In this document: positions 4,794 through 62,368 of the stretch, in pieces | How positions within the stretch are numbered: position 1 is the stretch's first letter | Layout: the number at the start of each line of letters is the position of its first letter | IMG/VR virus record: IMGVR_UViG_3300026097_000876 | Location: 1 to 64,000 of that record | Reading direction: 5' to 3' (one strand) | Length of the DNA: 64,000 bases | The notes under the pieces: generated by a model | The model's database searches: none | The model's input: the letters and a program-made list of their open reading frames with translations, nothing else | What the model was told of the DNA's origin: nothing | Program-made: the position numbers and the translations under genes

Positions 4794-5588
4794 TTATACC
4801 TTGTATAGTTTTACATAGTTAAGACGTGTTTCGTCTGCGCTGAACATACGATTCTTTGTATGCGACTTTACTTTAGCTTTAAGACGCTTGCGAGCACCTA
4901 CAGCGTGTTCGTACTTGTTCATGAAGCTAACTAGGTTGCCGTCAACTACACCTACGTAGTTGTAGCTCTCCCACTGACTGCTGTAACGCTTGTCCAGTAT
5001 TTCAATTACACCTTCTACAGTTGCGCCAACAGGCTCAATGTGACGGCTGTCACGGTACTCAATACGGATAGTTTTTGTAAGACTTGCCTCGTGCTGATCA
5101 CGTGCGATAAACTCCGGAGCAAACGCAATACGGCCCATGCTCTTAACCGCTACTTGGTCTTGCGACAGTTCTTTAACCATATCTACCTTGAAGCTGTCCA
5201 GCTCACCCAAGCCCAGCATCACATAACGCTTCATCCACTTGCGAGCCTCTTCTACACTAGCATAGTCTGCTTCAGTAGGTTCAAACATTTCAAAGTCTGT
5301 AGGAAGATACTTTGCGTCAGCAGTGTCCAACTTCTTAGCCCAGTAGAAACGCACAAGACTCTTATTGTCAAACTGTGTCTTGTTGTCTTCTGAGAAGCGA
5401 CGAGTGTCTTTGGTGTAAGTGTTGCCGTTGATGCGATATACTGCATACGCTACAGCAAGTGCGTCTGCTAGACTTACCGTTTTCAAAGGAACAGTTCTGT
5501 AAGATTTGTTGTGACTGTGCTTTAGAGCTTCGTCTTCGTGACGTAGTTCAAATGCAATTTCATCTTTTTTGAATTGTGAAAGTGCCAT
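4794..5588 (-). CDS. Hypothetical early protein
   Basis: Own TTGACA/TATACT promoter at ~5614-5640 and AGAGG RBS. Confidence 0.7.
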   Translation of the reverse strand: MALSQFKKDEIAFELRHEDEALKHSHNKSYRTVPLKTVSLADALAVAYAVYRINGNTYTKDTRRFSEDNKTQFDNKSLVRFYWAKKLDTADAKYLPTDFEMFEPTEADYASVEEARKWMKRYVMLGLGELDSFKVDMVKELSQDQVAVKSMGRIAFAPEFIARDQHEASLTKTIRIEYRDSRHIEPVGATVEGVIEILDKRYSSQWESYNYVGVVDGNLVSFMNKYEHAVGARKRLKAKVKSHTKNRMFSADETRLNYVKLYKV

Positions 5589-20689: not shown

Positions 20690-21154
20690 TTACTCGCTGT
20701 CAATAGCGTCTTGCACATGACCGTTATAGTCTGTGATTTCAATACGCTTAGGCTGTAGTTCTTCTGGAACTTCACGCTTTAGATGTACGTTAAGCATGCC
20801 GTTTTCAAGGCCTGCACTTACTACTTCTACGTGATCAGCAAGTGTAAACTCTCTACGGAAATTGCGTTCGCCAATTCCTTTGTGCAGATAGTTTACGTTT
20901 TCACCCCCTTTAGGAGATGTACCTTCTACACGCAAGATATTCTTGTCCTTAGTAATGTCTAAGTTATCCATACCGAAGCCAGCGACTGCGAGAGTAATCA
21001 TAAACTCATCTTCGTCGATCTGTGCAATGTTGTATGGAGGATATCCTGTGCTCTGACTATTAGCAAATGATCTGTCTAGTTCATCAAATAGTCTGTCAAA
21101 GCCAATAGTAGCTCTGTGTAGGTTAGGTAGGTCTAGAGTTGTTAGTCTTGTCAT
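20690..21154 (-). CDS. Small heat shock protein (IbpA-like Hsp20)
   Basis: GFDRLFD, YPPYNI, YLHKGIGERNFRREFTLA. Confidence 0.95.
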   Translation of the reverse strand: MTRLTTLDLPNLHRATIGFDRLFDELDRSFANSQSTGYPPYNIAQIDEDEFMITLAVAGFGMDNLDITKDKNILRVEGTSPKGGENVNYLHKGIGERNFRREFTLADHVEVVSAGLENGMLNVHLKREVPEELQPKRIEITDYNGHVQDAIDSE

Positions 21155-21209
21155 TTTGTTTCTCCTTTAATAAGCAAGATTTTAATGTACCCATTTAATG
21201 GCGTACATT
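21155..21209 (-). promoter_or_regulatory. ROSE-like RNA thermometer in the hsp20 5' UTR
   Basis: UCUUGCU pairs with SD AGGAGA leaving a bulged G; preceded by an AATGTAC/GTACATT hairpin and a late promoter ATAAATA. Confidence 0.6.
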
Positions 21210-21224
21210 TTTATTTATCATCTG

Positions 21225-22385
21225 TTAGTAACCAACAGTTGATTTTTCGTACACAGCATTATGTGTCTGTGTACATCTAACAAATGTAGTACATTTGCTA
21301 AGATTCTTTAGTTTTACTGCGCCAGCGTAAGTACAAGTACTACGCAACCCACCAAGAATACCTTGAACAGTATTACCCACTGTTCCTCGGTAAGGCACAA
21401 GAACTTCTCTTCCTTCACTGCTTCTATACTCCTTAAGTCCGCCAAAGTGTTTGTCATTGGCTGCTGTTGAGCTCATGCCATAGAACTGTACAAACTTCTT
21501 TTCTTCAATAACACGACGACCTTCATCCCAGTCAGTTCCGCTCATCTTAGGAACAGGACGTAGCTCATCTGTGGCATAGCGTTTGACAATTACTTCTCCA
21601 CCACCTTCATCGTGTCCGGCAAGCATGCCGCCCAGCATTACAAAGTCAGCGCCAGCGGCAAATGCTTTGGCTACGTCACCAGGGCAAGTGCAACCCCCAT
21701 CAGCAATAATATGGCCGCCGAGTCCGTGAGCCGCATCGGCACACTCAATAACAGCCGAGAGTTGAGGATAACCAACACCTGTCTGAATGCGAGTAGTACA
21801 CACACTACCAGGACCAATCCCAACTTTAACAATATCTGCTCCTGCAAGAATTAACTCCTCTGTCATTTCACCAGTAACTACATTACCGGCGATGATTACA
21901 ATATTTGGATACGTCTTACGCATCTCTGACACAAAGTCACGAAAGCGATTTGAATATCCATTTGCTACATCAATGCAAACATATTTTAGATTGCCGTCTG
22001 CACGATCATATACGTCTTTAAACTTGTTCCAGTCACTGTCATTAATACCAATGCTCATTGCTACATGATTAGTGCGTAGATATTCGTCTGTGTCAAAAAA
22101 GTCTACAAGCTCGTCTGCCGTGTATGTTTTTACAAGACAGGTAAACATACCCAAACGTGCAAGTTCATCTGCCATTTCAAACGTACCAACACCGTCCATA
22201 TTGGCCGCCATAATAGGAATTCCTTTATAGTGAGCATTTAAAACATTGTCAGGAAATTCTATTTCGGAGTTACGAAATGTATATTCACGCACCAACTCAA
22301 CTTCTTTACGACTACCAAGTGTGCTACGTTTAGGACGTATCAGCACATCTTTGTAATCTAGTTTGCTTTCGGTTTCGATTCTCAT
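21225..22385 (-). CDS. guaC: GMP reductase
   Basis: [39 protein letters not shown]. Confidence 0.95.
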
Positions 22386-22957
22386 CTTTTTACGCCATAA
22401 TTAAAACTAATTGAAATTCTGTCTTCATTAGTTACATTTGGTTGTACGCTATGTTTCATCCAACCAGGAAAAATATAAATTGCATCAGTCATAGCTTTGT
22501 ATGTTGTAGCTGTGCTAGTGAAATAATTAGGCTGTTCCATTGGAGGCAGAAAATACTCTGCGTTATCACTCCTTTCAAAAAACAAGTTTCCCTGCTCCGG
22601 AGTACTCTTTACGTAATAAACACCACTTAATATTGCACCTGCGTGATTATGTAAATGATTATATGCTCCGGGCTTATTGATATTAATCCAAATATTTTGT
22701 ATTTCCAACTCAGGAAGTTCAGACTGAACAGAACAATTAATCATCTCAGTATTGATAACTTTTACTAACTCATCAAACGCTTTGTTGTCGCCTTCCTTAA
22801 TTGAATTACTTTGCCAGCCAATATAATTAGAGACAGTAACACCGTCATCTGTTAACTGTCTGTCATATGCAAACGTAGACAATGCATCATTATCTACACC
22901 AGACAATAGTCCGGACCAGATTACACTAGGAAACCATTGTTCTGCCTGCAACGCCAT
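22382..22957 (-). CDS. Putative 2OG-Fe(II) oxygenase (TIGR02466-like)
   Basis: HLHNH...SGVYYV...FPGWMKHSV...RISISFN. Confidence 0.85.
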
Positions 22958-22958
22958 A

Positions 22959-23234
22959 TTAATAACCTCGTTCTGCTTGTTTTTTCTCAACAGTTTTGAG
23001 CCAACGTTTACGTCCAGCTGCTTTTGCTCTTGCACGTTTTTCGCTTGGTTTAATATATTCTCGACGTTCTTTTACTTCTTGTAATCTACCGTCTTCTTGA
23101 ACTTTCTTTTTGAACAATCGAAGAGCTTTACCTACATCGTCATTTCTTACTTCTACAGTAAGACCTTGTTTTTCTGTTTCGTTAGGACGAAACTGTTTTT
23201 TATTATTTCGATTGTTGTTATTGTGATATGCCAA
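22959..23234 (-). CDS. rpsU: Ribosomal protein bS21 homolog
   Basis: VEVRNDDVGKALRLFKKKV...REYIKPSEKR. Confidence 0.85.
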   Translation of the reverse strand: MAYHNNNNRNNKKQFRPNETEKQGLTVEVRNDDVGKALRLFKKKVQEDGRLQEVKERREYIKPSEKRARAKAAGRKRWLKTVEKKQAERGY

Positions 23235-26729: not shown

Positions 26730-26795
26730 TGTATTGCTCCAGTTGTTTAACAATGTTTATATAGTATAGAATACTTTTATCGTTTTGTCAACCAT

Positions 26796-56614: not shown

Positions 56615-57181
56615 TCACACCACAGTGTTGTCAATTAACAACTGATCCATCATTTGATCACTGGCCAACTGAATACCCATCTTCCACTGATCTTCTTCAT
56701 CTTCGTTGTAAAAAATTTCGTGATTGGGCTCTACCAACAACCAAGCCTTGTGTTGATACAGTTCTTCCTGAAGCTGTTTGACTCCCCAAGTGCTCATTCC
56801 GGCTATCAGTCTCCAACAGGCAGGTAAGTTGCCATCTACCATCTTGTCCAGCATTAGTTCGTCTGAACTAATACAATTGCCGTGGGTCACAGGAATAGTG
56901 TTTGTGCTGTTCCATTCATCAGTGTGCAGGAGTATTAGGCTCTGTTCACCCACTGGACCGCCTCTGTACACACTGCCAGTGGCACCTGTGTTGTAGATGC
57001 CACGTAGGCCCTGAAGCCTGTCAATGGTGAGATAACTGGGCTTGTTGAGAATCAATCCAAACACTATGAGATCTGTTTGTTCATAAAGATAAACCACAGT
57101 CTGTGCAAAAGTTGGATCTCGCATGGTGCCAGGGCGAGCAATTAATAGCTTGCCTTTGAACTTGGTTTCAACCTTGGTCAT
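56615..57181 (-). CDS. YqgE/AlgH (DUF179) family protein
   Basis: GKLLIARP..RDPTFAQTVVYL, GLILNKP, VYRGGPV, QLQEEL...AWL. Confidence 0.85.
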   Translation of the reverse strand: MTKVETKFKGKLLIARPGTMRDPTFAQTVVYLYEQTDLIVFGLILNKPSYLTIDRLQGLRGIYNTGATGSVYRGGPVGEQSLILLHTDEWNSTNTIPVTHGNCISSDELMLDKMVDGNLPACWRLIAGMSTWGVKQLQEELYQHKAWLLVEPNHEIFYNEDEEDQWKMGIQLASDQMMDQLLIDNTVV

Positions 57182-60439: not shown

Positions 60440-60661
60440 ATGTACATAGAGTTCACACAAGTTAAAAACGCTGGCTTTCATCGACACACACTGCGCAATG
60501 ATATCTTCGACAAGCTGACTAGCATACATACTCCCTATAGTGTAGACAGTGACATTCCTGATGAGCTGGTTGTGTACATGGCAGATCGATACTATACTAT
60601 ATTCTGTATACAATGGAATCCCCACAGTAAGATCTACTATGCATACACAGCACACAAGTAA
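60440..60661 (+). CDS. Small hypothetical protein
   Basis: 73-aa ORF after a GTAAATA motif. Confidence 0.4.
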   Translation: MYIEFTQVKNAGFHRHTLRNDIFDKLTSIHTPYSVDSDIPDELVVYMADRYYTIFCIQWNPHSKIYYAYTAHK

Positions 60662-60664
60662 GAG

Positions 60665-60949
60665 CGCATATACAAAGGCCCCGCACAAGAGAGCTTTATA
60701 TATACTCGCAAGCTCGCATATACAAAGGCCCCGCTGCTAGCTATACACAAAACAAAATTTCCTTGAGGCCCCGCTGCTAGTATCACGGTATCACACACAC
60801 TCTATACAGTGTAGATGCTTGCCGTAGAAAGACTGTGTGTCTAGGTTGATTTTATAGTGTGACTAGGTTGAATCTAGCGTGGGAAGAACCGTAAAAAGCG
60901 TTTGAAAGAAAGGTAAAAAGTATTTGAGAGAAAGGTAAAAAGTATTTGA
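60665..60949. repeat. Direct repeats: CGCATATACAAAGGCCCCGC x2, AGGCCCCGCTGCTAG x2, GAAAGGTAAAAAGTATTTGA x2
   Basis: Positions 60665/60715, 60726/60766, 60908/60930. Confidence 0.85.
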
Positions 60950-61355
60950 ACTATGCCTCTCGTCACCACGGTCAAGAAATTTTTTTTTGGCTATAGATCG
61001 TGCCAGAACCGTAATGCGAATAATTCTTATTTAACATTAGGCCTACAGTATTGGCACCGTAAACCCACCATTAAACTGTCTGAGAACTCGGCCTCTGTGG
61101 GGATAGATCTCTTACTAGCTATACAGTATACAGAGTGTGTGTATAGTATAGTGTAGCATGTTATACAATGTGACCGTTAGCGTAGTGTACGGTGTGTAGT
61201 GTATGGTATAGTGTGTATAGCTACTATAGTGCATAGTGACTTATTGCATACTGTGTGTTTGGCTGTGTGATCTAAATGCGAATTATTTGCATTTAGGCCT
61301 CTGCACTTTTTGTGTATAACTTGTGTATAAGTGTGTGCGAGAATATTGTGTGTAA

Positions 61356-61712
61356 AATCAAACACTTAGCAAATCTTGTGTAAAATCAAGCACTTAGCTC
61401 TGTGCATAAGTCCGCCGTTCGCCGCCTCGTTTGCGTTCGTCCCGTGTAAGTTATTGTTTTTGTTGAGGATTTTGTGTTCGTTTTGTTCTTTCTAAACAAG
61501 CACTTATGTGTTGTGGATAAGCTGTGGATAACTTTTGCGAGGGGTGCGCATAATGTGTATTATGTTAAATGAGAATTGGATGAGGAACGTGCGCTAAGTG
61601 TTTGATATTGTTGAGGTGGGGCCGTGCGCATTTAACATAATACCGGCCGTGTGCGCATATAATATATTATGTTAAATGAAGGTGGGGCGACTTGTGGACA
61701 AGCTGTGGATAA
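61356..61712. promoter_or_regulatory. Cluster of DnaA boxes and IHF consensus sites
   Basis: TGTGGATAA at 61512, 61523 and 61704, TGTGGACAA at 61693; WATCAANNNNTTR at 61356, 61384 and 61595 (minus strand). Confidence 0.75.
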
Positions 61713-61782
61713 CTTTCGGTTCGCGCACCCTCCCTCCTTGTACTCCGGTCTCTTCGTTCCCGCTTGTATGTTTTGTGCCTTT

Positions 61783-61828
61783 GCCCTAACTGTTATATAC
61801 AGTATACGGCCTCGCCGCCAAAAAGTCA
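61783..61828 (-). promoter_or_regulatory. Leftward sigma70 promoter pointing into the DnaA-box cluster
   Basis: TTGACT-17-TATACT-GTATATAACAGTTAGG; no convincing downstream ORF. Confidence 0.7.
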
Positions 61829-62002
61829 ACCTTCTGAGGTCTTGTAAGTCATTGTTTCGTAAGGGAAAAATAAATTAAAAAAAGTTTTTTTCCTCTGTGT
61901 TTTCAATAGCTTACAAAAAAAATAATGCTTGCTTTTTTGCGCAAACGAGGCTATACTGCTTATACAGTAAAAAATTAACTTAAACTATATAGAGGGCTAT
62001 AT

Positions 62003-62368
62003 ATGCAAAACTTTACACAAGCAGCACTTGCAGACGTGCAAGCACTAGTTAACACTTACGCTAATATTGCGGGCGATTACGAAGCAACGCTGTTATGCGG
62101 CGTATGGCACTACATGTGCGACAGCGGCATATACACAGACGCATTTAGCGAAGCAGATGCGGAGTATGTAGAAGCGCACTACGACAACAATGTGCAATAC
62201 TACAACGACGACGATTGCGGCTACACAGACGCATTTTATGCTGTAATATTTGACGACGATAAATTGCAATGCAATGCAGTGTTACAAGCACAAGATGCAA
62301 TTGCAAACAAGCATAATTTGCATAACGAAGATGTTGCACGTATGTGTATGCAACTAGAAGCAAGTTAA
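62003..62368 (+). CDS. Acidic early protein
   Basis: TTGCTT/TATACT promoter, AGAGGG RBS; 21 D/E versus 3 K/R. Confidence 0.75.
   Translation: MQNFTQAALADVQALVNTYANIAGDYEATLLCGVWHYMCDSGIYTDAFSEADAEYVEAHYDNNVQYYNDDDCGYTDAFYAVIFDDDKLQCNAVLQAQDAIANKHNLHNEDVARMCMQLEAS

Follow-up and report, generated by a model that had tools for sequence, protein, structure and literature searches.

A gene-free stretch of 1.3 kb (60662-62002) lies at the head of the early genes in the window analyzed here, which comprises bases 1-64000 of a 261,806-bp IMG/VR virus contig with 37.7% G+C. A plausible 73-aa ORF ends at 60661, and the first early gene starts at 62003. Genes in the window include those for a T4-type major capsid protein, NrdA and an NrdC.10-like AAA protein. 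The nearest cultured capsid proteins, at 66-72% identity, belong to the jumbo phages Phosso, Vibrio phage 2.275.O, XaC1 and PA5oct. The same phage is present at 100% identity in an NCBI metagenome contig of 331,644 bp, and also in a JGI contig that differs by one base in the gap. The coordinates of a second gene show that the NCBI contig closes on itself at window position 26,732|26,733, and two assemblies close into a 331,644-bp circle. The collapsed genome is therefore a 332-kb circle, as expected for a terminally redundant or permuted phage.

The features of the gap are listed below, with protein-binding functions inferred from sequence alone. Related contigs and lineages recovered in the searches described below carry L numbers, and G001 is a complete relative of 357.6 kb.

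60677-60780 (+): three GGCCCCGC(TGCTAG) motifs, the only copies in the contig; the same motif recurs beside the hub in relatives.
60884-60949 (+): three tandem 22-bp repeats that run into the invariant 22-mer; relatives carry different short tandem repeats at this place.
60941-60962 (+): invariant single-copy 22-mer AGTATTTGAACTATGCCTCTCG, a candidate packaging signal or terminal-redundancy boundary; contig depth steps from 14 to 32 here.
61311-61330 (+): weak double DnaA box, TGTGTATAA twice with 2-bp spacing.
61340-61396 (+): two 28-bp direct repeats, each holding a relaxed box (TGTGTAAAA) and an IHF-consensus site (61356-61368 and 61384-61396).
61447-61510 (+): T-rich tract (52% T, 30% G+C) on the 5' side of the boxes, the side where the E. 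coli unwinding element lies relative to box R1; a candidate unwinding element, the orientation argument being inference.
61512-61531 (+): double DnaA box 1, two perfect TGTGGATAA boxes 2 bp apart.
61543-61570 (+): dif A, GGTGCGCATAA-TGTGTA-TTATGTTAAAT, matching E. coli dif at 27 of 28 positions with both arms exact.
61593-61616 (-): conserved 24-mer holding the IHF consensus (61595-61607), midway between dif A and dif B and inverted in relative L181.
61624-61640 (-): inverted XerD half-site (exact arm at 61630-61640) fused to GTGCGCA.
61650-61677 (+): dif B, with the XerD arm exact, two mismatches in the XerC arm and the central region AATATA.
61693-61712 (+): double DnaA box 2, TGTGGACAA then TGTGGATAA; a second assembly has a SNP at 61693 (T>C).
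61717-61800 (-): leader of the leftward transcript; the plus strand is pyrimidine-rich here (35% C, 38% T), so the RNA would be purine-rich.
61801-61829 (-): leftward sigma-70 promoter (TTGACT, 17 nt, TATACT) with the start-region motif shared by the early promoters; the exact pattern is also found in L140/L142/L145, L134 and L143, with weaker variants in L133, L137 and L127.
61860-61925 (no strand): A/T tract (80% A+T) between the divergent promoters, among the least stable 50-mers of the gap.
61928-62368 (+): first rightward early promoter (TTGCTT, 17 nt, TATACT) and the first early gene (62003-62368).

The initial annotation had described this region as an array of DnaA boxes, IHF sites and iterons with an A/T tract and a promoter firing into the array, and each of these elements was found in place. 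A 24-mer occurs twice (61512-61535 and 61693-61716) and gives perfect TGTGGATAA boxes at 61512, 61523 and 61704, and TGTGGACAA at 61693. The 261.8-kb contig holds only 10 perfect boxes, and three within 205 bp has a Poisson P of 8e-8 per window; the window holds 5 perfect boxes against 0.83 expected in shuffles. Of 57 relaxed boxes (TGTGNAWAA) genome-wide, 8 lie in 61311-61712, all on one strand (P = 8e-14). Overall, three perfect boxes, one near-perfect box and five relaxed boxes form a co-oriented cluster within 402 bp. The IHF consensus WATCAANNNNTTR occurs at 61356(+), 61384(+) and 61595(-), which is 3 of 37 genome-wide within 252 bp. However, these matches sit inside a repeated 17-mer, itself part of a longer conserved 24-mer, so they are not three independent events, and IHF is a plausible but not the only candidate ligand. 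The putative iteron TATTATGTTAAATG occurs at 61558(+), 61629(-) and 61665(+), the only copies in the contig. The leftward promoter (TTGACT at 61829-61824 and TATACT at 61806-61801 on the minus strand) is the best sigma-70 match in the region.

A scan of viral contigs with the TATTATGTTAAATG repeat plus its GCGCATA prefix hit at least 119 contigs, many of them 7-12 kb with the site 33-100 nt from an end. Because of this pattern, we compared the repeat with dif, the site used by the host recombinases XerC and XerD (reference sequence from PMC3025954). The sequence at 61543-61570 has the 11-bp XerC arm, 6-bp central region and 11-bp XerD arm of a dif site, differing from E. coli dif at a single position outside the arms. 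Together with dif B and the inverted half-site, it accounts for the only such sites in the contig. The resulting layout is a double DnaA box, 11 bp, dif A, the IHF-consensus site, the inverted half-site, dif B, 15 bp and a second double DnaA box. The 2-bp spacing of the boxes is that of the "double box" form that E. coli DnaA binds preferentially in vivo (PMC11317965). In contrast to a chromosomal dif, which is a single site with converging KOPS that guide FtsK, there are two sites plus a half-site here, and no GGGNAGGG was found on either strand of the 262 kb; only one Chi site was found. The arms are of the E. coli (proteobacterial) type and differ from the Bacillus and Frankia seed sequences, and the early promoters are canonical sigma-70 promoters, from which we infer that a proteobacterial host is likely for this uncultivated family. 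A homology search with the AlgH-like gene, carried out for host prediction, gave only metagenomic homologs.

We searched the 262 kb for phage-encoded ligands and found no DnaA, HU/IHF, tyrosine recombinase or FtsK-gamma domain, so host proteins would have to be the ligands. A ParB match was below cut-off (E = 0.012), and no plasmid Rep or integrase was found. An Rfam search of the gap gave only a sub-threshold miRNA-like hairpin over the inverted dif arms. To look for a replication signal, we computed cumulative GC skew in G000 and in the complete relative G001, where it followed gene direction only and gave no independent signal. The T-rich tract at 61447-61510 lies on the side expected for an unwinding element but is not an outlier in duplex stability, and the DnaA-trio rule (trios within 16 bp of a box) was satisfied only minimally, with a single run of three NAN triplets 8 nt from box 61512 and none near box pair 2.

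No cultured phage matched the gap in blastn searches with the whole gap or with the 22-mer region. We identified relatives in two independent ways. The double-box 20-mer hit at least 119 viral contigs; of 104 distinct contexts, 83 lie in ORF-free DNA and 46 hold four or more co-oriented boxes. Two of these contigs are syntenic relatives, namely L057, from a 357,559-bp contig rated complete, and L039. A box-independent 21-mer from the left part of the gap hit 21 contigs. Extended by one base to AGTATTTGAACTATGCCTCTCG, it is invariant in 18 relatives whose flanks have diverged completely, is single-copy per genome and is preceded by lineage-specific short tandem repeats.

The hub is conserved in position in about 20 related jumbo-phage contigs, 0.3-0.8 kb downstream of the 22-mer, but its content varies. 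Six lineages carry DnaA-box arrays 310-760 bp downstream, always on the same strand, with varying numbers and spacing of boxes, and the arrays keep strand and position while the flanks diverge. In G001, five of the nine perfect boxes form this one cluster. About nine lineages have other repeats at that place instead. Pairs of direct dif sites 74-107 bp apart lie 580-790 bp from the 22-mer in three lineages (the window/L144, L133 and L138). Relative L181, the start of a 155-kb contig from a phage of about 350 kb that begins inside the hub, carries the whole module (DnaA boxes, dif A, IHF-like site, inverted arm and dif B), with its dif pair 96 bp apart. Perfect DnaA boxes lie within 80 nt of dif in L181, L199/L285 and L272, and beside dif in L133, whereas about 0.17 such sites would be expected by chance among 119 dif hits. 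Single dif sites flanked by DnaA boxes occur in two further jumbo contigs. Most lineages lack dif and about half lack DnaA boxes, so neither is essential to the family. In L181 the segment between dif A and the inverted half-site is inverted relative to the window. Site-specific inversion would leave exactly this footprint, although this inference rests on one case and is only suggestive.

We next asked whether the 22-mer marks a genome boundary. In the one public run that holds the phage, the contig to the left of 60965 has a depth of 14.1, while the contigs to the right have depths of 31.6, 35.4 and 23.7. Seven family contigs start or stop within about 0.5 kb of the 22-mer. Both facts fit a packaging start or a terminal-repeat boundary, but they also fit graph breaks at a sequence shared by co-occurring relatives, and joints at depth 15-19 show that strain variants exist in the same run. 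Contig ends do not fall at one fixed base but scatter from -539 to about +300 around the 22-mer, and we rejected them as exact termini. PA5oct, the nearest cultured relative, did not serve as a model for the boundary. It has a 39-kb terminal repeat full of early genes (record positions 1-39,080), but its syntenic gene-free gap (245,980-247,788) is internal and has neither DnaA boxes nor dif; the near-coincidence of 286,783 minus 39,080 with that gap is chance. We consider the boundary reading about as likely as not.

A search of the dif region against cultured phages found 271 records, most of them lytic myoviruses of the rV5 and PVP-SE1 groups, which carry a perfect-armed dif 170-300 bp inside their terminal repeat. 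In phage HdK5, the terminal repeat is 459 bp and a dif with both arms exact lies at 170-203 inside it. Hena1, Klebsiella phage DP, UPEC06 and EdH4 each hold two copies per record, at positions 170-316, and the Hena1 and DP copies lie within annotated terminal repeats. We found no paper describing this. Xer-dif hijacking is known for small filamentous phages, plasmids and genomic islands, and we found no paper describing it for large virulent-type tailed phages.

Taken together, the observation in the initial annotation was correct, as the DnaA boxes and IHF-consensus sites are present and far more clustered than chance allows. Its interpretation of the region as a host-type origin or a datA-like sink was only partly supported. 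The suggested genome-end or packaging role gained some support from the invariant 22-mer and the depth step, and an origin is not excluded but gained no independent support from skew, duplex stability or the trio rule. Of a datA- or DARS2-type regulatory site, only the sequence ingredients (DnaA boxes plus an IHF site) are present, and a datA-like sink is not favored. The dif identity of the supposed iterons, which had been missed, moves the analogy from oriC/datA towards a recombination or replicon-establishment site.

Our best, though tentative, explanation is that the gap is a cis-acting hub that recruits host chromosome-maintenance proteins to the phage DNA and acts as a replicon-establishment module. 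It would offer two double boxes plus weaker ones to DnaA, two directly repeated dif sites plus an inverted half-site to XerC/XerD, and probably a site between them to IHF. In this view, the 22-mer, 0.4-0.8 kb to the left of the hub, is the packaging start or terminal-redundancy boundary, and the linear, terminally redundant virion DNA has a dif copy near each end. Host XerCD would recombine the two copies and circularize the genome, as Cre-loxP does for P1, and could later resolve multimers. DnaA dimers and IHF would assemble around dif and either open the adjacent T-rich tract as a host-type origin, helped by the conserved early promoter that fires into the array, or serve as the architectural accessory that lets Xer act without FtsK, or both. 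What the analysis demonstrates is the sequences, their statistics, their positional conservation and the recurrent pairing of DnaA boxes with dif, while all protein binding, the terminal redundancy, the recombination and the origin activity are inferences. The model does not explain why there are two dif sites with different central regions. Moreover, chromosomal Xer recombination needs FtsK, the phage has no KOPS motifs and no known activator, and a T4-type replisome has no known need for DnaA.

If dif lies inside the terminal redundancy, this would give a simple account of how such genomes circularize and escape exonucleases without a recombinase of their own. The tight and recurrent pairing of dif with double DnaA boxes suggests either a new accessory role for DnaA or a compact host-type origin-plus-resolution unit, and either would bear on the unexplained persistence of jumbo phages in bacterial cultures. 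A more far-reaching possibility, which we consider unlikely but not excluded, is that DnaA, with IHF, licenses FtsK-independent XerCD recombination at phage dif sites, so that virulent tailed phages circularize their terminally redundant genomes with the host's own chromosome-dimer resolvase, a host-supplied equivalent of Cre-loxP. This would apply to the present jumbo family and, using dif alone, to the rV5-like and PVP-SE1-like phages.

Several alternatives are each less likely than this tentative model. The region may be a plasmid-like maintenance module for a persistent (episomal, carrier-state) lifestyle, in which DnaA boxes, IHF and the T-rich tract form a theta origin and dif resolves multimers as cer and psi do for plasmids, without circularization on entry being the point. 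The layout resembles P1 oriR and iteron plasmids, with DnaA boxes flanking repeats, an IHF site, and A/T-rich and G/C-rich blocks; jumbo phages of related clades persist in cultures by an unknown mechanism (bioRxiv 10.1101/2024.12.31.630880), and the collapsed genome is circular. However, the absence of a convincing ParB, plasmid Rep or integrase, the lack of dif in most relatives, the minimal trios and the uninformative skew make this unlikely. It is similarly unlikely that the gap is chiefly a regulatory region in which DnaA and IHF tune the leftward and first early promoters to the growth state of the host, with the other repeats as operators. The leftward promoter does read straight into box pair 2, about 80 nt downstream, L039 has three more DnaA boxes just upstream of another early promoter, the IHF-like motif sits upstream of several early promoters in G001, and in L127 the lineage-specific repeat also lies inside early-promoter spacers. 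However, the early promoters of this phage at 62-72 kb carry no DnaA boxes, and this reading does not explain the perfect-armed dif sites or their recurrent pairing with DnaA boxes.

A DNA-entry pause, in which membrane-bound DnaA holds the first-entering DNA while the early genes are expressed, would parallel the proposal for the T5 injection stop signal. T5-like phages conserve paired DnaA boxes, 3 bp apart, in untranslated repeat-rich regions of the left terminal repeat, one of which lies between divergent pre-early promoters (bioRxiv 10.1101/866236). This reading is doubtful because the T5 model is itself hypothetical, dif is not accounted for, and the array here lies upstream rather than downstream of the early genes. 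A decoy by which amplified phage genomes titrate DnaA, as datA does, and XerCD, blocking host initiation and chromosome-dimer resolution, is less likely still. High-affinity double boxes with an IHF site do recall datA and DARS2, and the dif arms are perfect, but there are only four strong boxes per genome, many relatives lack the sites, no clear benefit to a lytic phage is apparent, and the tight positional linkage to the 22-mer and promoters is left unexplained. Least likely is integration into the host dif as a lysogeny route for a jumbo phage without an integrase. Although the dif sites match those used by Xer-exploiting mobile elements and no phage recombinase was found in the 262 kb, a scan of one genome per 185,579 species for the invariant 22-mer found only three short MAG contigs and no prophage (the scan needs an exact 21-mer, so absence is not proof). 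In addition, all family contigs are free phage contigs and the gene content is that of a T4-like lytic phage.

Xer-exploiting integrative elements such as CTXphi, VGJphi and TLCphi likewise have phage-borne dif-like sites that depend on host XerCD, but those are small filamentous phages found integrated at dif, whereas this is a 332-kb tailed phage for which no integrated copy was found. DnaA-dependent origins (oriC, P1 oriR and RK2 oriV) and the regulatory sites datA and DARS2 share with the hub co-oriented DnaA boxes at helical pitch, an IHF site and a T-rich tract on the same side as the unwinding element of E. coli oriC, but here the central repeats are dif sites rather than initiator iterons, the trio rule is barely satisfied and the T-rich tract is not exceptionally unstable. 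The untranslated regions of the T5 left terminal repeat are also repeat-rich and gene-free, about 1.2 kb long and beside pre-early or early genes, with conserved pairs of DnaA boxes. The T5 boxes are 3 bp apart and partly degenerate and no dif is described there, and because the two regions share no sequence homology, this is a likeness of layout and not membership by descent. In the plasmid cer and psi sites, a Xer core site closely adjoins binding sites for other host DNA-binding proteins, but these are ArgR/ArcA and PepA sites on the XerC side only, whereas here DnaA boxes and an IHF consensus lie on both sides of the core; no accessory role of DnaA in Xer recombination is known. Chromosomal dif of the E. 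coli type has arms identical to those of dif A, but the phage carries two direct copies with different centers plus an inverted half-site, flanked by DnaA boxes. In phage P1, loxP lies next to pac and serves to circularize terminally redundant DNA. The phage dif sites similarly lie a short distance downstream of a candidate packaging signal, whose pac or terminal-repeat status is inferred, so that they would fall within the terminal redundancy, and the rV5-like phages show dif inside real terminal repeats. In this case, however, the recombinase would be that of the host and not of the phage.

The tandem double DnaA box TGTGGAYAA-GC-TGTGGATAA was found in at least 119 viral contigs from IMG/VR (L007-L125). 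Of 104 distinct contexts, 83 are ORF-free and 46 have four or more co-oriented boxes, and many are followed by a GGGGGAGGGG block. A second cluster of three perfect DnaA boxes, two direct and one inverted, was identified in the relative L039 at 5126-5160 (minus strand as displayed), where it sits just upstream of another early promoter. In the relative L127, the DnaA boxes of the hub are replaced by about a dozen ACCGGT-N4-ACCGGT motifs, and the same motif also lies inside early-promoter spacers, while in the relative L138 an ACAGCCG motif flanks the dif sites instead.

A 22-mer at window 60941-60962 is invariant across 18 otherwise diverged relatives (from the set L127-L145). It is single-copy per genome and is preceded by lineage-specific tandem repeats, and contig ends cluster around it. 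The source run (X1) contains strain variants. One of these, joined 61930->62404, lacks the first early gene, with 20 other letters in its place, at depth 15; another joins the dif B region to 62429 (61677->62429) at depth 19.

About a dozen early promoters at 63571-70313 of the full IMG/VR contig (G000) and in relatives read TTGACA, 17 nt, TATACT, and each is followed by the same GTATATAACAGTTAGGGCAA leader. The palindromic ACTGT-N5-ACAGT over the start site looks like a shared operator. Elsewhere in the window, a cluster of ten tRNA genes lies on the minus strand at 18-2382. Host-like genes were also identified at 20690-23234 and 56615-57181, namely HSP20, IMP dehydrogenase, a 2OG-Fe(II) oxygenase, ribosomal protein S21, ClpS nearby, and an AlgH-like DUF179 protein.

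Lytic rV5-like and PVP-SE1-like myoviruses carry a dif-like site with both arms exact, 170-300 bp inside their short direct terminal repeat, which makes two copies per virion DNA; our literature search did not retrieve a paper on this. In E. coli phage HdK5 (MK373780.1) the site is at 170-203 and the repeat is 459 bp, and the site was also identified in Hena1, Klebsiella phage DP, UPEC06, and EdH4. PA5oct (MK797984.1), in contrast, has no DnaA boxes and no dif in its syntenic gap at 245,980-247,788; this gap is 1.8 kb, gene-free and very A/T-rich, and it holds the annotated ncRNA004 of this phage and repeated TTTGTGATTTTAATTTAAA motifs.
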